A stretch of 64,000 bases of DNA, from NCBI GenBank assembly GCA_965240325.2, contig OZ251226.1, forward strand, positions 1,116,001-1,180,000. Reading direction: 5' to 3'. How positions within the stretch are numbered: the stretch's first letter is position 1; every line of letters begins with the position of its first letter. Below are positions 1,155 to 21,996 of this stretch, piece by piece. The position numbers and the translations under genes are program-made. The notes under the pieces are model-generated. The model made no database searches. It was not told the origin of the DNA and saw nothing but the letters and a program-made list of their open reading frames with translations. The stretch comes from Rebecca billardiae RCC1528. Its lineage: Eukaryota > Protista > Haptophyta.

Positions 1155-4100
1155 TCAGCTCTCGATGGCCTCGTCGTGTCGCATCAGGAACGCGTTGTGC
1201 GACATCTGCCGCATCCCCACGGACGGCCTGATGGGAGGCGGCTTTGCCGACGAGCGCCGGCGCCCGAGGCGCCCGTATGGTTCAGCGGCTGGGCCCATCG
1301 GCATGCCTGCGGTGGCGGCGAGGCGCTGGGTGGGCGCGAGCTCCGATTGGCCGACCGGCGTGTTGGACAGGCGCCGTTGCTGCGCCGCTGCAAGCTCCGC
1401 CTGGCTCACCACCGGGGCGTTGGACAGGCGCCGTTGCTGCGCCGCGAGCTCGGCCTGGCCGACGACGGCGGCGTTGGACATGCGGCGTTGGGCCGCCGCG
1501 AGTTCCGCCTGGTGGCTCATGGCGTTGGACATCCGGCGCTCCGCCGGGCCCATGGCATTGGACATGCGGCGCTGCACCTCGGGGCTACCCGCCATGCGCG
1601 CCATGGCCGCTCCGGGCCCGAGCGAGAGCGGGGGCGGACCACCCGCGCCCGCGCCCGCGCCGTTGGCAAAGCCAGCATTCGACGCGCGCCGCAGCGCCGC
1701 GAGCGGCGGAGACCCGGAGGCGCCGCCATCGCCGATGGGTGCGAGCGCGCGGAGCGGCGGCGAGTTCTGCACCGCCGCGGCGGTGGCGGCGGCGGCGGCG
1801 GCGCCGCCCACGCCCGTCATCGGGCGCAGGCCTCGCAGCCTGTCCGCGGCCGCGCCGTGGCCGGCCGTGCCCGGCGCGCGCATCCACGCGGGCTGCGCGG
1901 TGCGCGCCTGCCACTCGGCTCCGCTGTAGCTCATGGCACTCTGCCGCAGGGGCTGGAGCGGCGTGCGGGGCGCGGCGGAGATCGACTCGCGCCGCGGCGC
2001 CGCGTACGACGGTACCGGCGCCGAGGCGGCCAGCGGCTGCAGCCTCAGCCTCTCCTCGTCCACCGCGCCACTCCCGTCGGCGAGGGACGGCACGCGATGC
2101 GGCCGGCGAGCGGCGGAGCCGTCCGGGTCGGTGGCGCCGCCGCCGAGCCACCGATCGCTGCCCTCCTCGCTGAGCGGCGGCGGCCCGTGCCACGGCCCGG
2201 CCGGCGGGGCTGCCAGGCTGAGGAGCGACGCGCCGCGCTCGCGCCGCGGCGGGCTGGCGCAGCGCATGCTATCCACGTCGCTCGCCTCCGCCGACTCCGC
2301 CTCCGAGTCCGGGTAGCCGCTCCCCGCGCCGTCCGCGCTCCCGAGATCGTCGAGATCGGTGTCGTCCCAACCGCCGTCATCGCCGCCGTGGTCCTCGCCG
2401 GCGCCGAGCGCGTGCTGGAGGAGCAGCGCGCGCCGCGCCTCGGAGAGCTCGCGGATCTCCGAGCCCGCAACCGACGAGTGCGCAGAGTGCGCGGCGGCCG
2501 ACCCGGGCGCCGAGCCGTCGGAGCACGTCGAGCGGCGCGCCGAGTCGAGCGATTCGTGGCCGGCCGCCGAGCCGCGCGACGACGAGAATGAGCTTCCGCC
2601 GAGCTGCTCGGAGAAGGCGTCGAGCTGCTGCGAGTCGTTCTCGCCAAAGGCGTGGCTCGCGCGGTCCTCCTCGTCCTCGTCGTCGAGCGCCGAGTGCAGC
2701 TGCGCGCGCTCCGAGGAGAGCGCGCTCCCGCCACCGTCGGCGTCGTCGCTACACACGCTCTGCGAGCGCGCCAAACCGCTCGCGCGCCGGCCGGCGCCGG
2801 GCTCGTGGTCGGACAGCGCGCGGAGGTCGTGCAGGGTGCGCACGCCGTCGTACCCACCGGCGGCGGGAGGCGGCGGGTCGGCCAGCGTGCGCCACCCGCC
2901 GCCGCCGAGCCCGCCGCCGCCATCGAGCCCAGCGCTGCCGCCACTGCCCGCAGAGCGAGGGGAGCTGGGGAGAGATTGCGATCTGGGGAGGCTGGGCTCG
3001 CTGCCGTCATCTGGCCCGCTGCTGCCGCGCCGCCCGCCGCCGCCGCCGCTGTTGAACGTGCTGTTGGCGTCGTCCTCGGCCCCGTCCTCGGCGCCCGCGA
3101 GGCCCCTCGGCGCCCGCCCGCCGCCCGCGCGCGCGAACGGCGCCATGGCCTCGTCCCAGGCCGCGCTCGGACGTTTCGCGGAAACTTCCTCGCGCGTGTG
3201 TGCGCGCAGGGCATCCGGACTCAGCCGGGCGACGGGTCCGGGGCCTTCGCCGCCCGGCGCGAGCGGCGCGGCGGTTGCGGGCGCGTGCGGGCGCAGCTGA
3301 TCGGCCGCGCCCCGCACCCCGCCGCAGTGCGTCCCGCCAGCTGCTCGGCCCACTGCGCCCGCCCCGGCGGCCATGCTGGCTGTGCCCGCTGTGGCGACCA
3401 CGCACGTAGCGCCGCCCGCCGCGCCGCGCGCTTGCGCCTCCAGACTGGGCGGGCCACGGCCCGGGCCGCCACCGGCCACGGCTGTGGCTGCGTGCGCGGG
3501 CGGCGAGGGGCCAGGCCAGCTCTCCGCGAGGGCCTCCACCGGAGCCGGCGCCCCGGCGGGGCGGCTGGCGCGGCGCCCGGCCGCTAGCTCTGGGCCGGCG
3601 CCGCGCGCGGCGGGCGCGCTGGCGACCGCCGCCTCGGCCGGCGCGGCGGCGGCGGCGGCCGACGCCTCAGTGTGGGCCTTGCGCTGGCGGGCGGAGGCGG
3701 TCTCCGCGTGCTTGCGTGCGCCAGGCTGGCGGGGGACCGAGGCCTCGGAGGGCCGGCGCGCGCCGGGCTGCCGGGCCGCCGCTGACTCGGACGGTCTCCG
3801 AGCGCCACCCTGCGTCGACTGTGAGCCTCCGCGGCCGCGCGCGCGGCTGGCCGCCTGGGCAGCTGCGCCGCCGTCTGCGTCCGCGGCGTCCGGCGTGGCG
3901 GCGGCGGCGGCGGCGTCGACGGAGGAGCCGCTGCTGCTGCCGCCGCTGCTGCCGCTCCCGAGCCCGCCGTCGACGCCCGAGCCGCTGCGCGCGTTGCGCG
4001 CACGGCGGCGGCGGCCGGCGCCGGCGCTACCGTCCTCCTGTGTGGCGGCGCGCGACGCGCGGCGTGGCTTGCGCGCTCGCTCGATGCCAGCGGCGGTCAT

Positions 4101-6659
4101 GGCGGCCTCGCGCTCGGCGTGGCTGAGCTGCACGCCGGCCGCGTCCGCCAGAGACAGCGCCTCCCGCACCAGATCGGCGGCGCGCTCCTTGGCTCCCGCC
4201 GCCGCGGCGTGCGCGGCCGTGCCGCCGTCAGCGCCAGGGCCGCCACTCCGCCCAGCGGCGCCGCTGCCCGCGCCGCCGCCGCCCATGCCGCCGCCGTCGT
4301 CCCCGGCGGTGCTCTGCGCGAGGGCCAGCGCGTCGCGCAGCCCCGAGTGCGCGAGCGAGACCGCGAGCACGTCCATCCCCGCCGCCACCTCGGCCGCCAT
4401 CGCGGCGCTCAGCGGCGGCTTGCTCTGTTTCGGCCTCGTGGCACCGCTCTCGGCGCCGTCACCGTCGCCGGCGCCGCCGCGCGCGCGCCGCCGCCCGCCC
4501 TGCGCCTCGCCGGCCTCGTCGTCCGCGTCCGGCCCAGCTCCCTCGAGGATACTGGCCAGCGCGCCCGCCAGCTTGTGCGAGCGCGCGCGCGCCTGGCTGG
4601 GGGAGGGCTGCGGCTTGGCGGCCGCATGCGCCGAGGGCGAGCTTTTTGCGCCTGCTTTGCTGCCACCGCCACTCGCAGGCTTGCTGCCGCGCCTCGCGCG
4701 CGCGCGGCCCGCCCTGTCCGATGGTCCGGCCGCGGCGGAGGGCGCGCCCGATTCGCTGCTGCCGCTGACGCGACGGCTCCCGCCCTGAGAGCGGCCGCCG
4801 CCGCCCGCCGCGCCACCCGCCGCCTTGGCGGCGGCGGCGGCGGCCGCCGCGGCCGCCGCCGCGCGCTTGCGCGAAGCAGGGGCCCACTTCCAGCCAGCGC
4901 CGAGCAGGCCTGCGGCGCCGCGCTCCGCCGAGTCCTCCGCGCCCGACTCGGAGCCGCCGTCCTCGGACTCGGCGTACGGCCCGAGCTTCCGCCGGCCGAG
5001 CGCCTCCCGCGCCTCGTCGATCGCGGCGCGCAGCTCGAGCCGCGCGAGCACGGACTTGCGCCGGCGCGAGTGGAGCACCCCGAGCAGGACGGCCGCGCCC
5101 TTTGCCTCCGACGCGGGCAGCTCGTCAAAGCCGCCGTCGTCGTCGTCGTCGTTGTCGAGGTCGCGCGCGCGCTCGGCCTCCGCCTCCGCCTCCGCCTCCG
5201 CCTGCTCGGACGAGGCGAAGAGGGCGAGCAGAGACTCGCGCGACAGCCCGCCGCTCGGCATACCGGCGGCGGCGCCGGCCACGTGCTCGTCGGCAGCGGA
5301 CGACGGTTTCGACGCCTTCTCGCCGGCGCCGGCCGCGGCCGAGGCCGCCGCCTTTGCGCGCATCACTTCGCGCGTGGGCGAGGTGCGCCCGCGCTCGGGG
5401 GACGCCTTGGTGCGCGAGCTCCGCCGGCGTGCGCCCGCGCCGCCCTCCTTCGGCGGCAGCGCCGGCTGGCCGCCTCCCTTTTCTGCGCCGCCTTTTTTGG
5501 AGCTGCCAAACGATGAGCGGCGGCGCGGCGCTCGGTGCGCGCCGCCGGTTGGCGAGCTCTGTGCCGCGGGCGCGCCGGCTGGGACCGCAGCGGTCGGAGT
5601 CGCGGCGGCGGCGGCGGCGGCGGCCGCGGCGCTCCCCGACACGCGCCGCTTCTGCTTCGATGGCTTGCCCCCGCGGCTCGCTCGGCGCGGGTGGCCCGCC
5701 TGCGCCTGCGGCTCTGACTGTCCCAGTGCCGGGAGTTGTGTCGGGCCGCCGGCCTCCGCGCCCTCGGCAGCCGCGCTCTCGGCGGCGGGCGCGACTGACG
5801 CGTCCCACAGGGCGCGATGCGCGCCGCCGGGCTGCCTGGTCGGCGACGCCGGTGCTGATGCCCCCGCGGCAGCGCCAGCCCCCGTCGGCGGCGGCATGCT
5901 GGCCGACGCCACGTTCGCCGCCTCCGCGGCCAGCCTGCCTCGCGCCTCCGCGTCCGCCTCCTCCTCCTTGTCGTGCGTGCGCACGGCGTGGAACTCGCGC
6001 AGCCTGCGCGGCGCGCGCACAATCTGCTTCGCCAGGGCCAGCCGCCGCTCGAGCTCGGCCCACGGGTCGGCGGTAGCCGCGGCGTGGTCCGCGTTCACGG
6101 CGGCCGTCGCGTCTCTCTCGAGCACCTCGAGGATCGAGTGGAGCCCCCTGCGCACGTCGTCCGCGTCGGCGGAGACGTCGGTCACTCGCTGCAGGAGCTG
6201 CGAGAGGAACGCCACGTACTCGCCTTCGTCCGCGCCAAAGTCGGTCCACGTGTCCACGAGCTCGAAGAGCCCCGCACAGAACGCAGACATGGGCATGCTG
6301 TCGGCATCGGCGGTCTCGCCGGGCGCGGCGGTGGACGCGCCGGGTCGGAAGAGGGCGAGATCGCTCGCCCAGTCCTGCAGCGCGAGAGCGCGCGCGGCCG
6401 ACTCGGGCGCGTCCTCCGCCGTGCTCCCGAGCACGCGCGAGATGCGCGTGTACAGCGCGCAGTAGTCGTCGAGCTTCATCCGATCGCCCTCCTGCAGGCC
6501 GACGGCGTTCCAGAAGCGCGCGATCGCGCCCAGGATGGCCGGCGAGCGCATGAGCAGGCGGCGCCATTCAAGCTGCTCGTCCGACTCCTCGGCCCCGTCC
6601 TCCGCCTCATCATCGTCGCTCGCCGCCCCGAAGGCACCCTCGCCGGGGTGGCGAGTCAT
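1155..6659 (-). CDS. Large low-complexity Ala/Gly/Ser/Arg-rich protein (~1834 aa) with a conserved N-terminal helical (possibly EF-hand-like) domain; paralog of 50119..53889
   Basis: Uninterrupted ORF. First ATG is at 6659 (the track starts at a GTG 10 codons upstream). The N-terminal block FWNAVGL...LALQDW...MPMSAFCAGLFELVDTWT...EYVAFL is shared with the ORF at 50119. The C-terminus carries RR[ML]SN repeats. Confidence 0.75.
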   Translation of the reverse strand: MTRHPGEGAFGAASDDDEAEDGAEESDEQLEWRRLLMRSPAILGAIARFWNAVGLQEGDRMKLDDYCALYTRISRVLGSTAEDAPESAARALALQDWASDLALFRPGASTAAPGETADADSMPMSAFCAGLFELVDTWTDFGADEGEYVAFLSQLLQRVTDVSADADDVRRGLHSILEVLERDATAAVNADHAAATADPWAELERRLALAKQIVRAPRRLREFHAVRTHDKEEEADAEARGRLAAEAANVASASMPPPTGAGAAAGASAPASPTRQPGGAHRALWDASVAPAAESAAAEGAEAGGPTQLPALGQSEPQAQAGHPRRASRGGKPSKQKRRVSGSAAAAAAAAAATPTAAVPAGAPAAQSSPTGGAHRAPRRRSSFGSSKKGGAEKGGGQPALPPKEGGAGARRRSSRTKASPERGRTSPTREVMRAKAAASAAAGAGEKASKPSSAADEHVAGAAAGMPSGGLSRESLLALFASSEQAEAEAEAEAERARDLDNDDDDDGGFDELPASEAKGAAVLLGVLHSRRRKSVLARLELRAAIDEAREALGRRKLGPYAESEDGGSESGAEDSAERGAAGLLGAGWKWAPASRKRAAAAAAAAAAAAKAAGGAAGGGGRSQGGSRRVSGSSESGAPSAAAGPSDRAGRARARRGSKPASGGGSKAGAKSSPSAHAAAKPQPSPSQARARSHKLAGALASILEGAGPDADDEAGEAQGGRRRARGGAGDGDGAESGATRPKQSKPPLSAAMAAEVAAGMDVLAVSLAHSGLRDALALAQSTAGDDGGGMGGGGAGSGAAGRSGGPGADGGTAAHAAAAGAKERAADLVREALSLADAAGVQLSHAEREAAMTAAGIERARKPRRASRAATQEDGSAGAGRRRRARNARSGSGVDGGLGSGSSGGSSSGSSVDAAAAAATPDAADADGGAAAQAASRARGRGGSQSTQGGARRPSESAAARQPGARRPSEASVPRQPGARKHAETASARQRKAHTEASAAAAAAPAEAAVASAPAARGAGPELAAGRRASRPAGAPAPVEALAESWPGPSPPAHAATAVAGGGPGRGPPSLEAQARGAAGGATCVVATAGTASMAAGAGAVGRAAGGTHCGGVRGAADQLRPHAPATAAPLAPGGEGPGPVARLSPDALRAHTREEVSAKRPSAAWDEAMAPFARAGGGRAPRGLAGAEDGAEDDANSTFNSGGGGGRRGSSGPDDGSEPSLPRSQSLPSSPRSAGSGGSAGLDGGGGLGGGGWRTLADPPPPAAGGYDGVRTLHDLRALSDHEPGAGRRASGLARSQSVCSDDADGGGSALSSERAQLHSALDDEDEEDRASHAFGENDSQQLDAFSEQLGGSSFSSSRGSAAGHESLDSARRSTCSDGSAPGSAAAHSAHSSVAGSEIRELSEARRALLLQHALGAGEDHGGDDGGWDDTDLDDLGSADGAGSGYPDSEAESAEASDVDSMRCASPPRRERGASLLSLAAPPAGPWHGPPPLSEEGSDRWLGGGATDPDGSAARRPHRVPSLADGSGAVDEERLRLQPLAASAPVPSYAAPRRESISAAPRTPLQPLRQSAMSYSGAEWQARTAQPAWMRAPGTAGHGAAADRLRGLRPMTGVGGAAAAAATAAAVQNSPPLRALAPIGDGGASGSPPLAALRRASNAGFANGAGAGAGGPPPLSLGPGAAMARMAGSPEVQRRMSNAMGPAERRMSNAMSHQAELAAAQRRMSNAAVVGQAELAAQQRRLSNAPVVSQAELAAAQQRRLSNTPVGQSELAPTQRLAATAGMPMGPAAEPYGRLGRRRSSAKPPPIRPSVGMRQMSHNAFLMRHDEAIES

Positions 6660-7093
6660 CCTCGCGGCCGGCTGGTGCCGCTGAAACACGGGAAGGAGCC
6701 GTGGTGAGGGTACCTTCGGAACGACGGATTCGTGGCTTCCGTCGTCAATAGGCCTTCATTACCCAGTCACCAGTGGAAGGCCCTTTTATTAGCATGTCTT
6801 ATTGCATCTGACCAGGGCTTCGTCAGCATGTGATTATGAAATCGGTTTTAAGCTCAATATGATCTCGTAGCAGTTATCAATTGTTGGCCCGAATTCACGA
6901 ACGGATTCTTAACCGCGTACTTATTGAGGCGAATATTCTAACACTCACTGTTCGTCAAGCTGATGAGTACTGCCAACGTACTACAGTATTGGTGTGCAAC
7001 CCGAACGTCATTAACCAAGCCGTTCAGTACTCAAGGTACTGGCCAAACGATCGCTCTGAGTCTGACGGCTGATGAAGCGGCGCTGTTGCCACC

Positions 7094-8450
7094 TCATCGT
7101 AGCCGGAAGTGCCGATTTCGATCCTGAGGGCGGTCACTGGCGTACGCGGCGGCGGCGTCGACCACGGCACGCAGCCTGTCCAAGTCGTACCCGCCCCGGC
7201 CGGCCTCCCGCTCCGGCGCAGCCGGTCCGTCCGTGCGGCCAGCGTCACCCGCGGCGCGGCGCGCTCGCACCATCTGCGCGACGGCGCGCACGCCAGCCGG
7301 CGGCTCGCCGTGCGCTCCGTCCTCCCCTGCGCCCAGCGCCTCCTCCAGATCTTCCAACGCGTCCTCAAGCGCAGCCGCTTCCGCGGCCTCCGCGGCCTCT
7401 GCGGCCTCCGCGGCCTCGCCCTCCTCGCCCTCGGCGCGCCGAGCGCGCCGCGCCTTGTCGACGTCGGCCGGCGACTGTCGATCGCCGAGCACGAGCTCTG
7501 CCAGCGCGACCTTGCTCGACTCGTCCATGGCCGGGCCGAGCAGGGTGTGCACGCCCAGCCGCAGGAATGCGAGCGGCAGCGCCTCCGCCACCGCACCCTC
7601 CGTGCGCATGCCGACAGCATCCGCCGCGTCGGCGCCCGCGCCGCGCGCGTCCGCGCTCAGCGCCCGCGCCAGCTCGCGCGCCAACGGCACCGCGCCCACG
7701 AGCGGGTACTTGTCGTGCGTCTCGAAGAACTCGAGCCAGCGGCGCGCCTCGGCGGCGCACGTGCGCGCCGCGGCGGAGCGCGCGCTCGCGCTCGCCGACT
7801 TGCGCAGCGCCGACGCGGCGCGGCGCACTGAGCCGATCAGGCAGGCCTCGGTCGTGCAGCCCGTGCAGAGGTGGAGCGTCGCGTCCCGGCCGGTGAACAC
7901 GTGGTAGGATGCGCCGGGGCCGTAGAAGCGGCGGCCGCGGCTCACGTCGTACACGCGCCCGGCGACAGAGACGTACAGCGGAGCGCCGTCCTCGCCGCGC
8001 GCGCCGGCCTCGCTGCTCCCGCCCGGCGGCGCGCGCAAGCGGCCGTCGAACTCGACGAGATCGCTCTCAGACAGGACAGGCACGCCCGAGTCATCGCCCA
8101 CGTCCAGCAGCTCCTCGGTGCCGAGGAGCATGGGCAGGATGAGCGCGTGCGACGCGTCGGCACCGAACCGCCGCTTCCGCGCCTTGTGCCGCGCGAGGTC
8201 GCGGAACAGCTGCCAGGCCCACGGCGCGCGGGCGGTACGTGAGCCGTGGGCGGTCGGCGAGGCGCAGCGTGGCGCGCGCGCGCGCGCGCAAGCGCTGCGC
8301 ACGCACCTTCATGAGAGCCAGATTGGCTGCGCGCGCTGGGGCACGGACGGTGTCCTCGGGCAGCACGAGGAGCGCCAGCGCGCAGGCGAGCACGACAACA
8401 AGAAGCGCATCGAAAAACCGGCCACAGCGCGATGCCGCCGCGGCCGCCAT
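7094..8450 (-). CDS. Cytochrome b5-like heme/steroid-binding (MAPR/neuferricin-like) protein with N-terminal TM anchor; exons 8450-8307, 8209-7094
   Basis: Motif [34 protein letters not shown]. The hydrophobic leader exon joins in frame through a GTGCGT...GGCAG intron. Confidence 0.85.
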
Positions 8451-8635: not shown

Positions 8636-11600
8636 CTAGGACGCGACGCGCTGAGGCTGGCCGCGGCTCCGCAGCCCCCACGTCCGCGCCCGGCTCCCCT
8701 TGGGGCTCTCGTCTGTGGCGCGCGCCTCTGCGTCCTTGGACTCGCGCGCCCGGATCCTCTGGATCGCGTCGTGGTGCGCCGTATTGGCGAGCTTGATGCG
8801 CTGCGCCTTCTGCACCTCCTTGATCCACTTGGGCTTCTCCGGGACGATCGAGTAGATGATGAGGCAGCCGAGGGCTGTGCGCGCGTGGCGGCGCGCGCAG
8901 GCGAGCGTCGGGCGCGCGCGCGCGCGCACGCGTCGGTCAGGGCGGCGCCGGGCGCTCGGGCGGTGCCTCTCGGGCGCGGCAGCCGTCCGCGCCGCCGCCG
9001 CCGCCGCTCGTCCTCGGCGCACGCACGCACGCACGCACGCCGCGCGCGCACGCACGCACACACGCACACACGCACACACGCACGCACGCACGCACGCACG
9101 CCGCGCGCGCACGCACGCACACACGCACACACGCACACACGCACGCGCGCGCGCACGCACGCACGCACGCACACACGCACGCACACACGCACACACGCAC
9201 ACACGCACGCACGCACGCCGCGCGCGCACGCACGCACGCACGCACACACGCACACACGCACGCACACACGCACGCACGCACGCCGCGCGCGCACGCACGC
9301 ACGCACGCACACACGCACACACGCGCGCGCGCGCGCACGCACGCACCGAGCAGGTGCTCCCACACGAAGCAGACGACGACGCGCCACCACCATTTGACGT
9401 GCCCGTCCGCGTTCCAGAAGCGGTCGTGCTGCGGGTGCTCGGGGTCCTCCGAGTGCTGCGCCCAGCGGGCGGAGAGAGCGGGCAGGCGCGGAGGAGGCGT
9501 GGCGCGGCGCGGCACACGCGCGCGCGCTCGGGTCACGCTGTGCCGCACGCGCGCACGCAAGGCGCGTGGCGCGCTCGCGCCCGCTTCGCGCGCGCGCGAG
9601 GAGACTTGCGCCCGCGGGGCGCCCGCGGGGCCTCGGCTGCGCAAAGCAGAGACGCGCGGCCGCGCGCGCGCAACAGTCGCTCGGCCGCGCGCAGGGCGAC
9701 ATTCTCGCGCGCGCACGAGGAAGAAGATCTCAGCGGTGCGACTCGAGATGGTGGCAAAGGTGACGATCATCGGGATGGCCGCCCACACCGAGAAGACGAT
9801 GCAGTCGTCCCACGCGCCGACGGACTTGGCCTTCTTGGGCACCATCCGGCGGAACGCGTTGTTGATCTTGATCAGGTCCGTGCGCAGCTCGAGCTGGTTG
9901 TTCAGGTAGCACGCCACCGGCGTGAGCGGCCACACCACAGTGTACGTCGCGATGTACCCGATGAAGAGTACCACGTCGTAGTAGTCGTCCTGCGTGCTGT
10001 AACTCGGGAGCGCGAGCTCGTCCAGCGCCTGCAGCACGACGCGCGCCGTGTCCTCCTCGGCCGGCTCGCGGTGGGTCGAGAGCTCGCGCGGGTTGAACGA
10101 GTGCACGGTCTCGCGCTCCTGCGCCTCGCGCTCTGCCGGCTTCGCCTTCGAGTACGCCTTCGGGTCCATCGACGCGGACTTGGCGCGGCGCGCGTGCGCG
10201 CGCCGGCGCACGATCGACACCAGGATGAGGGGCCACACGTTTTCAAAGGTGAAGGCGGCAACCTGCGCGGGCGCGCGGCGCGGCGGGGGGCAAGGGGAGC
10301 AGAGCACAGGGCGGGCGGGTGAGGCCGGGCCGGGTGCTGGCGCGCTCCGGCGGGCGGGGCGGCACTCGGCGCGAGGCCACTCCGCCCACGCGCCCGACCG
10401 CATTGCCGTGCCCGCGCGCCAAGCCGTCCGTGCGGGCGGCTCACACGCGCGCACACACGCACACACACGCGCGCGCACACACACGCGCACACGCACACGC
10501 ACACACGCACACGCACACACACACACGCACACGCACACGCACACACGCACACGCACCTGGTTCATGCCGAGCATCGACGCGACCATCGTGTCGTGCTTGG
10601 CCATCCAGTAGTCCGCATCGCGCTCGTGCTGGATCAACTTGCCGAACAGCGGGAACTCCCACTGGCGCAGGTCGACGCCCGAGTCGACGAGCGGGATGTG
10701 AATGTACCCGAAGAACCACGACCAAAAGTACCCGTCGAGCCAAATAAAGACGAACAGATAATACACGTACTGCCGGTCGAACTGCTCTTGAAACGGCCAC
10801 TGCTCGCGCCGGGTGCACCACGCCGCCACGTAGGACCAGAGGACGTACTGCCCGAACATGATGCAGCCCACGTAGATGGCCGTGTTCAGAATGTACGTCT
10901 GAAAGTAGTACATCATCTCCTGCGAGCGTGCGTGCGTGCGTGCATGCGTGCGCGTGCGCGTGTGCGTGCGTGCGTGCGTGCGTGCGTGCGCGTGCGCGCG
11001 TGCGCGCGTGCGTGCGTGCGTGCGCGAGCAAGGGCGCGCCAGGGGCGGAGAGCGCAGGCGGGGAGGGCGGGGCAGGCGGGGTGCGCGCCGATGCGGCGGT
11101 GCCGCGTGGCGCGCACGCGGGGGGGGCGGGGTGGGGCGGAGCGCGGAGGGCGGCTCAGGCGAGGCGGGAGCGTCGGCGGCGCGGGGCGGCGCGTGGCGCG
11201 CGCGGTGCCATGCCGCGCGGCGCATCTGCCGCCAGGCGTCATCCGCCGCCCCACCCATTGCGCCGCCACCCTCGCCGTCCGCGCCGCCGCCGCCGCAACC
11301 GCCGCGGCGGCGGCTGCCGAGCGCGTGCGCGCCCCCTCGCCACGCGCGCGCGGCGCGCGAAGCACAGCGGCCTTCAAGAAGCACAGCGGCGCTTGAAGGC
11401 CAGGGTACACACGTAAGAATAAAGCAATAAAGATATAATAAGAGCAACAGCGGCGCACCTGTCCGGGCACGCCGTCGTACCGCTCGCACGCCCACACGTA
11501 TTGCGCGTAGGAGATGTATTCAATGCCCGTGAGGAGCAGCACCTGCAGCAGCATCTGCAGCGCGGTGTTGCCGAACGCGGGCATGCGGTTCCAGTTCGTG

Positions 11601-14600
11601 TACCGCGGCTTCTCGAGCAGCGTCTCCGCGTCCTTCCGCCACTTACCCGTGAACGCAGGGTTCCGCCGCTCGTTCTTGTGCAGGCCGTCCACGCCCCAGT
11701 CGTTGCGCAGCTCGGCGGAGCGCCGCCGCCAGAACACGACAAAGAGCGCCCCCCAGAGCGCGAGCGCCGAGCCGAAGGCGACCCACAGCGAGTTGTACCT
11801 GGGCGGGCGCGGGTGAGGGTTCGGGTGGGTTCGGGTTCGGGTTCGGGTTCGGGTTAGCACTTGGGCGCGGTGCGCGCGCGTTCGGAGCCGCGGGCGGGCC
11901 GGCCGCGGTGGCGAGCTGGGGTGAAGGGGCGCGGCCACGGCGCAGCACGCGCGGGCGGCAGGCAGCACGTCGCTGTGTGCGCGCGGCGCTCCTCGCGCGT
12001 GCACGCCCGCCCGCACGCCGCCACCCATCCCTCGTGCCGGCGCGCGCGCGTCCGCGCCACGCGCGTCCGCGCCACGCGCGTCCGCGCCACGCGCGTCCGC
12101 GCCACGCGCGTCCGCGCCACGCACAGAACAACGTCGCCACCCAGCTTCACCAGCTCGATGCAGAAGCCTGCCGCCGCAACGGGGAACAGCCACTCGACCG
12201 TGAAGTCGAGGAGCCCGAAGTACCACGCGAGCTCCTCGCCGAAGTGGTTGCGCAGCAGGTTGAGGTGGGCCTCGCTCAGCTCGGCCATGATGCCCCACGC
12301 CTTCTCCAGCTTGCGGTTGAACTCCCGGTCGTGCAGGGGAAAGGACGCCTCCACAATCTCGACGCCGTGCGCCTTGTACGTGCACGCGCCGAGCGCGGCG
12401 TACGGAGGGCCGAGCTCGGCGCGCTCGGTGACGAGCCGCGCGACCGAGGCGATCTTGTCCGCCGTGGTCATGGCGGGTGGCTCGGGGTCCAGCGACTGCG
12501 CCGGCGTGGCGGCGCGCGGCGCGCGCGTCCGCACGCACGTCGGTGCGTCCCGGCGCGCGCGCGGTGGCGCGCGCGGCGCGGTGGCGCGCGCGAGCAGCCC
12601 TCTGCGTCAGCCCGCGGTCGCTCGGCGGCCGCGCAACGCGCGCGAGCAGCCCTGTGCGTCCGCCCCGGTGCGCTCGGCGTCCGCGCAACTCGCGACGCAA
12701 TGATGAACCAACATATGAGTAATCTAATAAAAACAAAAAAAGGCGCGGGCGCGGCGCACCTCCTCCACCATGAGCCGCTCGCCGTAGTGGCTTTCGTACT
12801 CGTTCTCGATCGCCACTTTGCTCTCCAGGTCGTGCACGAGCACCACGTACGCGTGCCCGTCCGACCGCGCGCCGAGCGGCGCGCGGTGCGCGCTCACGTG
12901 CAGCCCAACCTCCTTGAGCTCCTTCAGGACCGCAGCGACCGCGCGCGCGCCGGGCTTAGAGCCCGCGCCGCCGAGGCGCGCGTGCGTGCGCCTCGCGACC
13001 ACCGGGTCGTCGAGGTCGCGCAGCACGATCGCCCAGAGGTACGGCTGCTCCGACGCGAACGCGAGCTCCGGGTACACCCACGCCATGCGCCGCGTGTACG
13101 CGCGCGTCTGAGGCATGCTCTCCAGCACGCGCCGCAGCTGCTCATAGTGTGCGCGCTCGGACTTCTTGAGCGCATTGGACGGCCCGGAGCGGTGCGCGCG
13201 CTGCAGGTACTCGACGTACTGCCTCACCGCGTCCGCCGCGCTCTCCGGCGCCGGCGCCGGCGCGGCCGAGCCCGCGCCGCCGCCCGCCGCCATCCCGCCG
13301 TCCCGACCAATCAGGTGGAGCATCATCGCGTCGAGCGAGCCGTGCGCGCGCAGCATCTGCGACGCGTCCGAGGGTGCGTAGAGTGCGGCAATCAGTCTCG
13401 AGAGGACGTTGCACATGATCACCGTGCGCGCGCGGTACTTGAACGACACGTCTGCGCCGGCGCGCGCGCGAGGCGTGCGCGCGGGCGGGGGCGCAGCTGA
13501 GAGCGCGCGCGCACGCGCGCACGCGCGCGCGACAGGGCGCGAGAGAGGCTCTGACAGTCCGCGCGCCGCGCGCGGCTCGAGCCTCGAGTGCCGGCGGCGC
13601 ACCGGACATGAAATCCTGCGAGTACACGCGGAAGGTGATGGCCTCGCGGCCCCAGAGCGCGGCGACCACGATCGCGGTGATCGAGGCGAACGCGAGCTCC
13701 TGCACCTGCGCCTTGAGCCGGTCCTCGTGCGTGCGCACCTGTCGGAAGATGAGCAGGGCCACAAACAGCGCCCACGCGCCGAGCAGGATGAACTCAAGCA
13801 CCGCAAACACGAGGAACGCGCCCTCGAGCTTGTACGTGAAGGACGGGTCGGAGCGCTTGTGCTGGTCCGAGATGCCGTACTGCAGCGTCGACACCACCCA
13901 GATCAGGCCCGCGAGCGCGATGCGCTTCACCCAGTAGTACTGCGGCAGATTCGCCATGCTCACCTTGGTCGACGCGGCCAGGACGGTCGCCAGCATCATG
14001 CCGGCCGCATAGAAGGCGATGTCAAAGATGGCAGGGACGACGGTGTACCCCAGGCCCAGCGGCATCATGATGATGAAGGACGGGTTGTTGTACCTGCGCC
14101 GGCGGCAGGGCCGGCAGCGGCGGCGGCGGCGGCCGTGAGCCGCGGGGCGCGTGAGCTCAGCCGCGCGCCCACACCACGTGAGGCACAGCAGACGAGGCGG
14201 AGAGGGCGCGCGCGCGCTCTTCGGGCCGAGTCGTACGGACCCCGCGCCGGCGGCCAGACGCGTCGCGCAGCACGGCCGCGTCCACAGACAGCAGCCCGCC
14301 ACGGCCGCGCGAGCCCATCCAGCGCAGGTCCGTGCACTCCCGCGGCGCCGGCGCCGACGCCCACGCCGACGCGCAAGCGCGCACGCATGCGCGCACGCGA
14401 GCGCGCACGCACCCGCAGATGGCGAGGGAGAAGATCCAGATGGCGTACTGCTGCGGGAGCCAATCGCGCAGCGGGTGGCGCCACAGCTGGCGCGTGAAGA
14501 GCCCGAACGAGACGAGCGAGGTCACCAGCGCGAGCAGGCGCAGGCACAGCTCCGAGTAGCCGTGCTCGATTGTCCCGTGCGTCGAGACCAGCACGATCGA

Positions 14601-15311
14601 ATCGATCCACTCGGACGGCGGCGGGTAGTCGGCGGGCGAGTCCTTGCCCGGCTGCGTGGCGAGGGTGAGCTGCGCGGCGAACTGCTTATGCTCCAGCCCC
14701 GGCTCGTACGCCACGGAGAAGACGTAGCAGTGCGAGTGGTGCCCGCGGTCAAGCGGGTCGCGCGAGCCGTCCGGCCACCCCGGGTGGTGCGGGTGACTCG
14801 TCTTCGACGTGCGCTTCGGGCACTCGATGGGGTCGAGCTCGGCGTCGGAGGACTTCTTGGAGAGCCTCCACGGCTCGTTGTCCGCCTGGCGGTACAAGAT
14901 CGCCGAGCGCAGCACGAGGTTCGACGGCACGGGCATGCGGCAACGCTCCGTCATGTTGTACAGGCCGCAGCCCGCCTCCTCGCGCGCCTTCGGGTAGAGG
15001 ACCATCGACACGCGGAGCCAGCGCATGTACGGCGAGAGCGGCTCCGTGTCGTTGCCAAAGACGATCTGCGCCGGCTCGCCCTGCAGCACCTCCGGCCCGA
15101 GCACCGTGTCCGTGAGCACGTTCCGCGAGCCGGCGCTCCAGAAGATGACGTCGTACGCGCCGCCGATGACGAGCGTGCCGAGGATGCCGAGCACGATGAA
15201 GCACATGAGCGCGTGCGGCCGGATGACGGCGTACACTGGGACCATATTCGGCAGCGCCACCAGCTCCGCCGGGTCCTCGATCAAGTCCTCGCGCTTCAGC
15301 CCGCGCCGCAT
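8636..15311 (-). CDS. TMEM181/Wntless-like domain fused to anoctamin (TMEM16), ~1349 aa; exons 15311-14413, 14093-13603, 13451-12760, 12495-12125, 11798-11459, 10919-10557, 10262-9717, 9455-9347, 8874-8636
   Basis: All 8 introns are GTGCG...CAG and phase-compatible (4050 nt total). Anoctamin motifs: FPLHD, LRNHFGEELAWYF, FWRRRSAEL..WG, DDYYDVVLFIGY, PL..YLNNQLELRTD, SVGAW, WEH..IVPEKPKW. TMEM181/Wntless-like motifs: DWLPQQY...YNNP and LYAPS. The start codon is uncertain because upstream in-frame ATGs exist. Confidence 0.75.
9019..9346. repeat. Degenerate (GCAC/CA/GC)n intronic microsatellite
   Basis: About 330-bp alternating purine-pyrimidine tract. Similar tracts at 10441-10556, 10925-11025 and 20261-20420. 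Confidence 0.9.
12046..12124. repeat. 15-bp minisatellite (GCGCGTCCGCGCCAC)x5 in an anoctamin intron
   Basis: Direct tandem copies abutting the splice donor. Confidence 0.9.
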
Positions 15312-17384: not shown

Positions 17385-20300
17385 ATGCCGCAGCCCCTGC
17401 CGCCGAAGGAGAATGCGCTGTTCAAGTCGATCGTGGTACGTGCCCCCATCGACGCGGCGCATCTCCGCCCGCGCGTGCCCGCCGCCGCGCCGCCGCCAGC
17501 GCCGCTCGCGCGCGCGCGCGGTGCGCGGTGCGCTGACGGCGTGCGGACGCGCCTCCCCTGGCTCGCGCGCGCACGCGCACGGCCTGGCGCGCGCAGAAGC
17601 ACTACGAGACGAAGCAGTACAAGAAGGGGCTGAAGGCGTCGGACGTGGTGCTCAAGAAGCACCCGGACCACGGCGAGACCCTCGCGATGCGCGGCCTCAT
17701 CCTCAACTGCCTCGACCGCAAGGCGGAGGCGTATGAGCACGTGAAGCGCGGCCTGTCCAAGGACATCCGCTCGCACGTGTGCTGGCACGTGTTCGGGCTG
17801 GTGCACCGCTCGGACCGGGACTACAAGGAGGCGGTCAAGTGCTACCGCAACGCGCTGCGCATCGAGCCGGACAACGGCCAGATCCTCCGCGACCTCTCGC
17901 TGCTGCAGGTGCAGCTGCGCGACAGGCACGGCTACCTCGAGACGCGGCATGCGCTACTCCGGCTCAAGCCGAACCAGCGCATCAACTGGGTGGGGATCGC
18001 GCTGGCGAACCATCTGCTCGGGCGGCACCGCCGCGCGTACGACGTGCTCGGCGCGTACGAGAAGACGCTCGACAAGACCGACATCGAGTCCAAGTACGAG
18101 CATTCGGAGATGCTTCTGTACAAAGTGGAACTGCTGCGCGACGGCGGCGTGAACGACGAGGCCGCCGCGGAGCTCGACGCGGCGGAGCCGATGATCGTGG
18201 ACCGCACGGCGGTGCGCGAGCTGCGCGCGGAGCTCCTGCTCGAGCGCGGGCGGTACGACGAGGCCGCCGCCGCGTTCACCGAGCTCATCGCCCTCAACCC
18301 CGAGCAGTACGGGTACCACGCCGGCCTGCAGTCCGCGCGGCTGCGCCGGCCGCCGCCGCCGCCCGCGCCCGGCCCGCAGACGCGCTCGCCGTACGGCGCG
18401 AGCCGGCTGCGCCGGCCGAGCTACGCGCACCTCTCTGCAGAGGAGCGCGCGACGCTGCTCGAGCTCTGCGCCGAGCTCGAGGCCGCGCACCCCAAGGCGC
18501 TCGCGCCGAAGCGCATCGCCCTGGACGTCCTGCCGCTGGGCGGCGGCGGCGCGGCCGCGGTCGCGGCGTTCGAGGCGCGCTTCGCGGCGTACACGCAGCC
18601 GCTGCTGCGCAAGGGCGTGCCCTCGCTCTTCGCCTCGGTGCGCCCGCTCTACGCCGAGCCCGCCAAGCGCGACGCGATCGGCGCGCTCCTCGTCCGCTGG
18701 CGTGACAGCCTGCTCGCGCACGGCACGTTCGATGGCGGCCCGCCCGAGCCCTCCCAGGCGGAGGGCCGTGGCGGGCCGGAGGCGCCGTCGACGCTGATGT
18801 GGGTGCGCTTCATGCTCGCGCAGCACCACGACGAAGTGGGCGAGTACGCCGCCGCGCTCGCGGAGGTGGACGCCGCGATCGCGCACACGCCCACGCTCAT
18901 CGAGCTGTACCTTCTCAAGGGTGCGCGCTCGGGTGCCCGTGGGCGCGGCCGCGCCTTCGCGCGCCACCATCCCCGCTGGGATCAGCGCCGCCCCCACGCA
19001 GTGCCCGCGGCACCGCGGCACCGGCCGTGCGGCCGCCGCCCCCCGCGGGCGCGGCTGGCCCTGTCCATCTGTCTGCCGCACGGCCGCCGACCTGCGCAGC
19101 CGGCGGCGCCGGCGGCGGCCAGTCGGCCGGCCGGAGCCAGCCCCGCACGGCCGGTGGCAGCGCGCGGGGTCGTGCACGTGGGGGACAGGCGCCCGCCCGC
19201 GCGCCGCGCGGCCTCGGCTGCCGTCCGGGCGCCTCCGTGTGCGCGCGCGTGGGCCTGCCGTGCGCCCGCCGATCGTCTCGAGTGGGGCGAGAGAGCGTGC
19301 GGGCGGGCGCGGCTGCGCGCGGCGCGGGCGCGGGGAGGGCGCCCGCACGTGGGCGGCGCCCGTGCCGTGGTGTTCAGGAGCCCCCGAGGCCGCGCGCGCC
19401 GCCGAGCCCCCTAACCCTAACCCTAACCCTAACCCCGCCCCTGCTTCCCTGACGCCCACCCTCCACCCGGCGCTCCGTGCCGCGCGCAGGGCGCGTGTTC
19501 AAGCACGCGGGCGACGTGTCGAGCGCGGCGGGCGCAGTCGAGCACGCGCGCTCGCTCGATCTGGCTGACCGGTACCTGAACACTAAGGGGACGCGCTACC
19601 TGCTGCGCGCTGGGAGAGTGGAGGAGGCGTCGCAGGTGATCCTGCTCTTCACCAAGGACGGCGCGGAGAGCGACAACAACCTCTTCGACATGCAGGTGCG
19701 TGCGCTGCGTGTGCGTGTGCACGGCACGCGCGCGGCGCCCTCTCGGCATGCGCGCGCGCGCGCACGGCAGGCGTGCGTGTGTGTGTGCAGCATGCGGGCA
19801 CGCGCCGTGCGCGTCGGCGCGCGCGCCGCCACCGTACGCCCCACAACACGGCGTCGCCCAACCCCTACACCAACCCTACCCCAACCCTACCCGTATGCCC
19901 GTGCAGTGCATGTGGTATGAGCTGGAGGCGGGGGCGGCGCTGTGGCGCGCGGGCGAGCTCGGGCGCGCGCTCAAGAAACTGCTGGCAGTCGAGCGGCACT
20001 TTGTGGACATTGTCGAGGACCAGTTTGACTTCCACACGTACTGCCTGCGCAAGATGACGCTGCGCGCGTACGTGCGGCTGCTGCGGATGGAGGTGGGTGC
20101 CGCGCACGCACGCACCGCGCGCTGCGCGTGGGCGGGAGCGTTGGAGCGGCGGAGCGTGCCGCCCGCGGCCATGGCACCGCGGAGCTGCGGGCGGCGGTGG
20201 GGGCAGGCGGCGGTTTCGGCAGCCAGCCGTGTGCCACGGCGGTGCCAGGGGAGGCGCGGGGCGCACACACGCACACACGCACACACACACACACGCACAC

Positions 20301-21996
20301 ACGCACACACACGCGCGCACGCACACACACACACACACACGCACACTCGCGCACACACGCGCACACACACGCGCGCACTCACACGCGCACACACGCGCAC
20401 ACACACGCACACACGCGCGCAGGAGCACGTGTGGGGGCACACCTTCTTCGAGCGAGCCGCAATCTCGGCGGTCGAGATCTACCTGCAGATCCACGACACG
20501 CGCAACCCGACGTCGGAGGGCGCGGCGGAGGGCGCGGCGGGGGCGGAGGCGGAGGGCGGCGAGGCGGACGCCGCGGCGCGGAAGAAGGCGGCGTCCAAGG
20601 CGCGCAAGGCGGCGGCGCGCGCGGCGGAGGCGGCGGCGCGCGAGGAGGCGACCAAGGCGGCGGCCGCGGCCAAGCCCTCCGCGGGCAAGGATGGCGGCGC
20701 CAAGGGCGCTCCGGCGAAGAAGCAGGTCAAGGTGTGCCCACTGGCCGCCGCGCTCGCGGCCGTGCGCGCCGTCCGGCGCGACCCACGCCGCCGCACGCGG
20801 CACGCCCTCCGTCCGGGTCCAAGCCCGCCCTCTGCTCACGCGCGCCCCCGCCCGCCGCCCTCCGCGCGCCCCGCAGGCCGACGGCGAGAAGAAGGAGCCG
20901 GACTTGGATCCGGACGGGGCCAAGCTCGCCGCGACAGAGACGCCGCTCACCGAGGCCTCGCGATTGCTCCGGACTCTGCTGGTGCGCGGCGGTGGCGGCG
21001 GCGCGCCCAGACCTGCGGGGATGGGCGTTGGCCTGGGTGGCCGGCGCGCGGCGCGCGCGCTGCGCCACGCGGAGGGCCCGCGCGCACGGTGCAGTCGCGC
21101 ACGCCGCCAGTGCACCGCGGCGCGCGCGCGCTGTGTGCGCGAGATGTGATCTCAGGGCCAACGCAGTGGGGACGGGGCCGGGCCGTTGCCGCGCCGAGCC
21201 GCCGCGCCGCAGCCGCCCGCCCGCTCGCTCACTGTGCGCCGCCGGGCCTGCCCGTCCCATGACGGGCTTGCGCGCCGCGCGCCGCGTGCCGCGCGCCGCC
21301 TCGCCACAGGTGCACTCGGCCGCCTCGCTGCAGGTGCAGCTGTGCACGCTGGAGGTGTACAGGCGGAAGGGGCTCCTGCTGCTCGCGCTGCGCGCGCTCA
21401 AGAAGGCGCTCGACCTCGCCGGCCCGGCCGAGCCGCGCGTGCACAGGGCGACCGTCCGCCTCTTCGAAGCGGTCGAGGAGCGCCGCGGCGGCGGCGGCTC
21501 GGCGGAGCCGGCGGCGGCGGCGGCGGCGGGCGCGGGCGGTGAGAATGGCGGCGCCGCGGCGGCAGCCGGCAGCGGCGAGGTGCGCACGGGGCCACTCGAC
21601 CCCGCGGTGCGCTCGGTGCTCGACGTGCAGCGCGCGCAGCTCGTCGCCGTCGACGGCCAGCCGGCGACCCTGAGCGCGTTCAACGACGCCTATTGCGCGG
21701 CGCACGCGCGCGCGTCGGCCGCAGCGTGCGTCGCCGCGGCGGAGATGTGCACCGCGCTCGAGCCGAAGCGAGCGGCGGAGGCCGCGAAGCTCGTCGCCGC
21801 GCTGCCGCTCGGCGCCGGCGCGTGCGAGCTCGCCGACGCGGTGGCCGCGCACCGGCTCCTGCTGCGCGAGCCGTTCAGCCGAGATGCGCCGGGCGCGGCG
21901 GCCGAGCTCGCGCGCCGCTGCGCCGAGGGCCGCTTTGCAATGTCCTCTCACTTCCGCGACGCGACGGCCGCGCCGGGCGGGGCAGCCGCATCATGA
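17385..21996 (+). CDS. NAA15: NatA N-terminal acetyltransferase auxiliary subunit (NAA15/16, Nat1), ~955 aa; exons 17385-17435, 17597-18920, 19490-19695, 19907-20092, 20423-20731, 20877-20981, 21310-21996
   Basis: LPPKENALFK, HGETLAM, SHVCWHVFGL, HTPTLIELY, LDLADRYLN, DMQCMWYE, EDQFDFHTYCLRKMTLRAY, DLDPDG. TPR repeats are present and splice phases are consistent. Confidence 0.95.
19408..19436 (+). repeat. Intronic telomere-type (CCCTAA)n
   Basis: Four tandem CCCTAA units in NAA15 intron 2, about 55 nt before the acceptor. Confidence 0.9.

Follow-up and report, generated by a model that had tools for sequence, protein, structure and literature searches.

The window analysed here is a stretch of 64,000 nucleotides from the haptophyte Rebecca billardiae RCC1528 (assembly GCA_965240325.2, contig OZ251226.1, positions 1,116,001 to 1,180,000 of the forward strand); the genome (G000) comprises 72 Mb in 41 contigs. 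On the minus strand of the window, from position 15311 to 8636, lies what is very probably one nine-exon gene in which a Wntless (WLS)/TMEM181-type membrane module is followed by a complete TMEM16 (anoctamin) protein, a reading that is strongly supported by comparison with related loci. A scripted rebuild reproduced the nine exons that the first-pass annotation had joined in frame. They add up to 4050 nucleotides, that is 1349 codons and a stop, and are bounded by GT-AG introns, with CAG at all acceptors and GTGCGT or GTGCGC at all donors. The third exon contains the end of the WLS-like module, LIAALYAPS (residues 483-491), and then runs on without a stop for 203 further codons, where about 200 had been stated before; as had also been described, it is joined in phase 0 to an exon carrying FPLHD and RNHFGEELAWYF. 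Reading through the donor of exon 3 leads into a TAG at 12726-12724, the stop that had been noted at 12724. The features of the gene are listed below in window coordinates (TM, transmembrane helix; ORF, open reading frame; AF2, AlphaFold2).

Exon 1, 14413..15311, minus strand: residues 1-299, with the N-terminus, TM1, the predicted lumenal beta-sandwich and the first helices of the 7TM bundle; colinear with the orthologue P0003 from residue 1, TM1 and beta-sandwich seen in the AF2 model of the orthologue.
Exon 2, 13603..14093, minus strand: residues 300-463, the central part of the WLS-like 7TM domain; Pfam WLS-like_TM with an E-value of 3.6e-9, junction 299/300 ungapped against P0003.
Exon 3, 12760..13451, minus strand: residues 464-694, the junction exon, with TM8 (the last WLS-like helix, to residue 491), the linker and the initial two thirds of the N-terminal cytosolic domain of the anoctamin; orthologues and paralogues retain this sequence in frame.
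Cytosolic linker, 13054..13368, minus strand: residues 492-596; from a six-sequence alignment and the AF2 model of P0001.
Intron 3, 12496..12759, minus strand: phase 0, T-rich on the gene strand, proposed as an alternative gene boundary; flanking codons ungapped against the intron-less ORFs of P0003, P0001 and the paralogue.
Exon 4, 12125..12495, minus strand: residues 695-817, with the last part of the anoctamin N-domain, FPLHD and anoctamin TM1; Pfam Anoctamin profile positions 2-35.
Exon 5, 11459..11798, minus strand: residues 818-931, anoctamin TM2-TM3; Pfam Anoctamin positions 45-144, 49 bits.
Exon 6, 10557..10919, minus strand: residues 932-1052, anoctamin TM4-TM5, the last codon (Gln1052) being the equivalent of afTMEM16 Q438; Pfam Anoctamin positions 162-233.
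Exon 7, 9717..10262, minus strand: residues 1053-1234, TM6-TM9 and the Ca2+ site; Pfam Anoctamin positions 271-405, 87.3 bits, and alignments to afTMEM16 and nhTMEM16.
Ca2+ ligand codons in exon 7, minus strand: Glu1059 at 10242-10244, Asp1145 at 9984-9986, Asp1148 at 9975-9977, Glu1177 at 9888-9890 and Asp1181 at 9876-9878.
Exon 8, 9347..9455, minus strand: residues 1235-1270, a conserved HP.H..FWN loop and the start of TM10; ungapped against P0001 and the paralogue.
Exon 9, 8636..8874, minus strand: residues 1271-1349 and the stop, TM10 and the cytosolic tail; from the gene model and the P0001 alignment.

Both halves were recognised by Pfam profiles above their cut-offs, in agreement with the families that had been named from the letters. 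The translation of exon 2 alone matched WLS-like_TM (PF06664) with 36.7 bits (cut-off 28.3), and exons 4-7 matched Anoctamin (PF04547) in colinear order, the hit of exon 7 by itself lying far over the cut-off of 28. Since the window has a GC content of about 70% and, over all six frames, about 15% of its 230-codon windows contain no stop, an open frame of 230 codons is common here, and the open frame across the junction is weak evidence when taken alone; as such it was rejected as an argument for a fusion, and homology carries the case.

The closest anoctamin relative of exon 7 in the genome is a locus on contig C1 with 58% identity; other paralogues did not exceed 39%. A tblastn search of this locus with the whole model aligned residues 92-338 and 380-974 in one frame. 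The locus (L011:1090-4863) holds one uninterrupted ORF of 1257 codons without an intron, and Pfam found both WLS-like_TM (48.9 bits) and Anoctamin (88.6 bits) in it, each over the cut-off. The paralogue lies at C1:483000-492999 (L011:1090-6203, plus strand), where at least two more anoctamin exons (5030-5233 and 5412-6203) lie downstream of the 1257-codon first exon. Starting from the ATG at 1090 would give a long Arg/Gly/Pro-rich extension, and the true start is probably further downstream.

An orthologue, P0003, was found by an exhaustive search of representative proteins with exon 2, which matched its residues 312-474. This protein of 1088 residues is a single called ORF on a JGI metagenome contig and has both Pfam domains, with WLS-like_TM at 45.9 bits over profile positions 8-247 of 247. 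It aligned to the model in one high-scoring segment pair (model 1-917, P0003 1-961) with 46% identity, the same start Met and no gap at the junctions 299/300, 463/464, 694/695 and 817/818. The C-terminal junctions are covered by P0001, a protein of 1621 residues that is the sole ORF of a 5479-nucleotide JGI contig with short flanks. P0001 matched WLS-like_TM with 43 bits and Anoctamin with 231 bits over profile positions 2-457 of 460, thus the complete domain, and was ungapped across the model junctions 931/932, 1052/1053, 1234/1235 and 1270/1271. Genomic copies of its subtype (subtype B, see below) in two other organisms have introns at places where the P0001 contig has none. The shape of this contig, together with introns that are present only in genomic copies, suggests a spliced transcript, and the contig is probably one; its JGI sample, 3300016954, belongs to a series that probably holds re-assembled transcriptomes of marine eukaryotes. 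One further organism (Logan SRR30872635 and SRR30872636) holds both subtypes, with P0006, which has 1122 residues and both domains (WLS-like_TM 53.2 bits), and P0002, which is preceded by a WLS-like ORF. At L014:3000-4289 (Logan SRR30872635, subtype A), an in-frame insertion of about 60 codons stands between AIVLH and DLDDP; it is not seen in the window gene or in P0003 and is most likely an unspliced intron that was read through by a prokaryotic gene caller.

The position of intron 3 itself bears on whether there is one gene or two. A profile of the junction region aligned to residues 37-234 of afTMEM16 with an E-value of 1.5e-17, covering the N-terminal cytosolic domain as well as TM1 and TM2. 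The homology sets in within exon 3, near residue 637 of the window protein, and extends across intron 3. The intron therefore lies inside the N-terminal cytosolic domain of the anoctamin, and a gene boundary at 12496-12759 would split one domain. Two adjacent genes could have been misjoined if a TMEM181-like gene ended by read-through into intron 3 and an anoctamin gene started further downstream. The stop that is met 14 codons after the donor of exon 3 would fit such an arrangement, as would the ease with which GC-rich DNA yields open frames. The first-pass annotation had named transcripts ending in 12496-12759, together with a separate anoctamin start, as the finding that would speak against a fusion, and had pointed to an AATAAA tract beside the stop. 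This scenario is very unlikely indeed, since it would cut the anoctamin N-domain in two; besides, three intron-less ORFs at other loci cross the point of intron 3 without a gap, and in the paralogue one ORF contains both Pfam domains. The AATAAA tract (12716-12738) is on the plus strand, which is the wrong strand for a sense signal; the gene strand is T-rich at this place, and intron 5 has a similar T-rich patch. For these reasons, the T-rich tract of intron 3 was rejected as a terminator or poly(A) site. Further, a six-sequence alignment revealed no Met in the linker that is conserved between subtypes A and B. Together, the paralogue ORF, the colinearity of P0003, the ORF of P0001 and the N-domain homology across intron 3 back the claim of a single-gene fusion with about 18 transmembrane helices. 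The locus is easily split or truncated by a gene caller, and it is the comparative evidence that fixes the gene structure. The short T-rich islands of the TTTATT type (minus strand, window 12722-12745 and 11405-11450) are located just past the donors of introns 3 and 5, introns that otherwise have a GC content of 70-80%; they could serve as signals within the introns or be what is left of an inserted element.

The fused proteins fall into two subtypes, A (the window gene, P0003 and P0006) and B (the paralogue on contig C1, P0001 and P0002). Apart from the fused loci, the genome has two standalone WLS-like_TM genes, at C34:1034201-1035136 (L017:1339-3183, minus strand, 114 bits) and at C23:676020-676634 (L018:1468-2442, plus strand, 80 bits), one of which is a complete ORF of 615 residues with its own stop. 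No anoctamin match was found on the contigs of these genes. They belong to the same Pfam family as the fused module but score higher (114 and 80 bits versus 36-49 bits), and BLASTP found no significant similarity between them and the fused N halves. These two observations indicate that the fused module is a separate, divergent branch; the alga thus keeps canonical and fused WLS-like branches side by side. Between subtypes A and B, the N halves matched each other with E-values from 1e-16 to 1e-28, and neither matched the standalone genes; within the genome, the fused anoctamin halves are mutual closest relatives, and both subtypes are present in at least two organisms. Taken together, this points to a fusion that arose once in an algal lineage and was then duplicated into subtypes A and B.

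The family is rare. P0001, P0002, P0003 and P0006 and two fragments were all that came out of word-based searches of 5.8 billion proteins and an exhaustive search of 1.84 billion representatives; the exhaustive search with exon 2 returned three matches only, a word-based search with an alignment of the N halves found nothing, and in scans of metagenome contigs no further locus was confirmed. A literature search for TMEM181 or Wntless paired with anoctamin/TMEM16, or for TMEM16 domain fusions, found no paper on this fusion. The fusion of a WLS-like module with TMEM16 is conserved and, as far as searched, previously undescribed.

The two modules are connected by a cytosolic linker (residues 492-596) of two parts. 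The first part, which is rich in Gly, Ala and Pro at residues 512-535, is of low complexity and variable in length (about 40 residues in subtype A and 150-200 in subtype B), whereas the following 60 or so residues (536-596) are conserved in both subtypes, end in ...W.YP and were predicted to be helical in the AF2 model of P0001, with a predicted local distance difference test (pLDDT) score of 70-88. Conservation and predicted helicity suggest a structural role of this segment between the modules. A single gene does not necessarily mean that the modules act as one: an internal promoter could give rise to an anoctamin-only isoform, or the chain could be cut after translation in the Gly/Ala/Pro-rich part, so that the modules would mostly act separately. 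The start of the linker is what an exposed, cleavable tether typically looks like, and subtype A has retained a Met at position 586. This Met is replaced by Lys in subtype B, the helical segment has been conserved in both subtypes, and at least four organisms and two paralogues preserve the fusion in frame; we consider separate products improbable.

WLS, TMEM181 and TMEM87A belong to the family of GOLD-domain seven-transmembrane (GOST) proteins, and the N half of the window protein resembles them in its layout. Hydropathy placed TM1 at residues 34-52 and seven more helices between residues 255 and 491. The fold was modelled with AF2 on residues 1-520 of P0003, which are about 43% identical to the N half of the window protein, from an alignment of ten rows. 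The model reached a pLDDT of 74 and a predicted template modelling (pTM) score of 0.74 and consists of a helix (residues 32-60), strands between residues 62 and 257 that form a beta-sandwich, and seven long helices between residues 259 and 498. The four best PDB matches of this model in Foldseek were all human WLS (7kc4, 7drt, 8tzs and 8tzr), with E-values from 1e-13 to 1e-12 and TM-scores of 0.54-0.59 over about 530 columns, followed by TMEM87A, and the ESM-Atlas features of the N half were nearest to TMEM181 clusters (0.95). According to this model, residues 1-491 are a divergent Wntless/TMEM181-type GOST module, in which an N-terminal helix precedes a lumenal beta-sandwich and a bundle of seven helices. 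The N half shares with human WLS and TMEM181 the match to the WLS-like_TM profile and the predicted helix/beta-sandwich/7TM fold, but its identity to human WLS is only 11-12%, and while WLS ends in a short cytosolic tail, the C-terminus of the module in the window protein runs into TMEM16.

In the C half, hydropathy revealed eight clear peaks, and the weaker TM5 and TM8 were assigned by alignment. The nearest solved chains are afTMEM16 (E-value 8.5e-29 for the P0001 domain), nhTMEM16, TMEM16F and TMEM16K, all of which are scramblases. In afTMEM16, Ca2+ is bound by E445, D511, E514, E543 and D547 together with the polar residues Q438, Q518 and N539 (PMC6355197); the list in that paper prints E534 for the fourth acidic ligand, but counting residues in the alignment leads to E543, a residue that the paper also mentions together with N539. 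The alignment placed Glu1059, Asp1145, Asp1148, Glu1177 and Asp1181 of the window protein at the five acidic positions and Gln1052, Phe1152 and Asn1173 at the three polar ones. All five carboxylates are kept, with one change from Glu to Asp, and they are invariant in the family members examined. The first-pass annotation had read the motif DDYYDVV as an alteration of the acidic TM7 positions and had concluded that gating may be modified; since this motif retains both TM7 ligands as Asp and Asp, the conclusion is not supported. Judged from these alignments, residues 597-1349 are a complete TMEM16 with an N-terminal cytosolic domain, ten predicted transmembrane helices and an intact site for two Ca2+. 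The N-terminal cytosolic domain, TM1-TM8, the five acidic ligands and the equivalents of Q438 and N539 align with afTMEM16 (PDB 6dz7) and nhTMEM16 (PDB 4wis). Differences from these two proteins are the Asp instead of Glu as second TM7 ligand and the Phe at the position of Q518; moreover, the fungal proteins have about 735 residues and begin at the cytosolic N-domain, whereas the window protein has about 600 residues, the 8-TM WLS-like module and the linker, in front of it. By analogy to other TMEM16 proteins, the C half probably dimerises and may also leak ions.

Several observations weigh against the assignments made so far. The N half is very divergent: besides lacking BLASTP similarity to the standalone WLS-like genes of the same genome, it gave no Pfam match to TMEM181_GOLD (PF21885) or WLS_GOLD (PF21883), neither for exon 1 at E-values up to 1 nor for P0003 and P0001 at E-values up to 0.01, which leaves the beta-sandwich supported by the predicted fold only. 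Algae are not known to have a Wnt, and no Wnt ligand is expected. The status of the P0001 contig as a transcript is deduced from its single ORF and UTR-like (untranslated region) flanks. In the C half, one polar Ca2+ ligand is lost with the replacement of Q518 by Phe, and an AF2 prediction that covered the linker together with the anoctamin half (P0001:700-1545), based on a shallow alignment of fragments, was poor, with a pLDDT of 58 and a pTM of 0.33. This model was used only for the well-predicted linker and N-domain. Its structural matches in VIA were weak (Z of about 10, root mean square deviation 12-13 Å), and the structural alignment to nhTMEM16, of low confidence, begins at its residue 15-16.

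The sequence of a TMEM16 protein does not reveal its function. The fusion could be real without its anoctamin half being a Ca2+-activated scramblase; this half might primarily conduct ions or, as has been proposed for yeast Ist2, play a structural or tethering part, with the WLS-like half serving as a sorting signal only. Apart from the lost polar ligand, a groove that could not be modelled leaves room for this, and Ist2 (PDB 9hhe) is indeed among the solved relatives, although with a weaker match than afTMEM16 (E-value 2.6e-11 versus 8.5e-29). Ist2 consists of a TMEM16 core and an appended region with an extra role; its extension is a disordered C-terminal tether, whereas that of the window protein is N-terminal and a folded 8-TM module. 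The conservation of the five acidic ligands in every family member examined speaks for a scramblase, as does the fact that the best-scoring solved relatives (afTMEM16, nhTMEM16, TMEM16F and TMEM16K) are without exception scramblases. Further, an early-branching TMEM16 of Dictyostelium is reported to scramble lipids (PMC5812556). A non-scramblase is therefore rather unlikely. Because the nearest solved relatives are scramblases and the Ca2+ ligands are conserved, the balance tips slightly towards the C half being a Ca2+-activated lipid scramblase.

Neighbouring genes, a long open frame and a set of repeats were also recorded in the window. Directly downstream of the fusion gene, at 7097-8302 on the minus strand, is an ORF with a cytochrome b5 domain. 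Upstream of the fusion gene, at 17645-21259 on the plus strand, at least two exons encode an auxiliary subunit of N-terminal acetyltransferase A (NatA_aux_su and TPR repeats). At 1155-6689 on the minus strand, a stretch with about 80% GC contains an open frame of 1844 codons without a Pfam match, which may be a low-complexity protein or a mere effect of stop-poor, GC-rich DNA. The introns of the fusion gene consist largely of simple repeats (window 8995-9345, 10440-10556, 10925-11040, 12055-12124 and 11825-11875), that is long (GTGC/GCGT)n and (CACG)n microsatellites, five tandem copies of the 15-nucleotide unit GTGGCGCGGACGCGC and a (CCCGAA)n run.

How could the two halves of the fusion protein work together? 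Their topology is consistent with one chain, since the C-terminus of a WLS-type module and the N-domain of TMEM16 are both cytosolic. WLS and TMEM87A have a large cavity that is open to the outer leaflet and contains a bound phospholipid (PMC9711517). In the explanation that fits best overall, and that we regard as fairly likely, the product of the fused gene is a lipid scramblase that is gated by Ca2+ and contains its own GOLD-7TM module for binding lipid or cargo. With its cavity and GOLD-like domain, the N half would probably bind a lipid, or a lipidated or otherwise hydrophobic cargo, from the lumenal leaflet. It would then either act through the conserved linker to tune scrambling or bring the scramblase to the part of the secretory or endosomal pathway that deals with cargo of this kind. 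The usual regulators of TMEM16 scramblases are Ca2+ and lipids alone; a direct regulatory coupling of the N half to scrambling is a tentative idea, on the unlikely side.

A more general idea is that the fusion acts as a "Rosetta stone", with WLS/TMEM181-type GOLD-7TM proteins and TMEM16 scramblases being functional partners also where they are separate. Loading or release of cargo or lipid in the lumenal-leaflet cavity of GOST proteins would then depend on, or gate, local scrambling. We regard such a general partnership as quite doubtful. Little is understood of the GOST family apart from WLS, and TMEM181 has remained an orphan; if the idea were true, animal TMEM181, and perhaps WLS, would work with endomembrane TMEM16 proteins such as TMEM16K or TMEM16E, and the alga would supply the first natural example of a cargo receptor and a scramblase combined in a single-chain machine. 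That the fusion has stayed in frame in several algae and has survived a duplication leads to the testable hypothesis that the GOLD-7TM module and the scramblase act together, and the fusion protein offers a natural construct for structural and reconstitution work.

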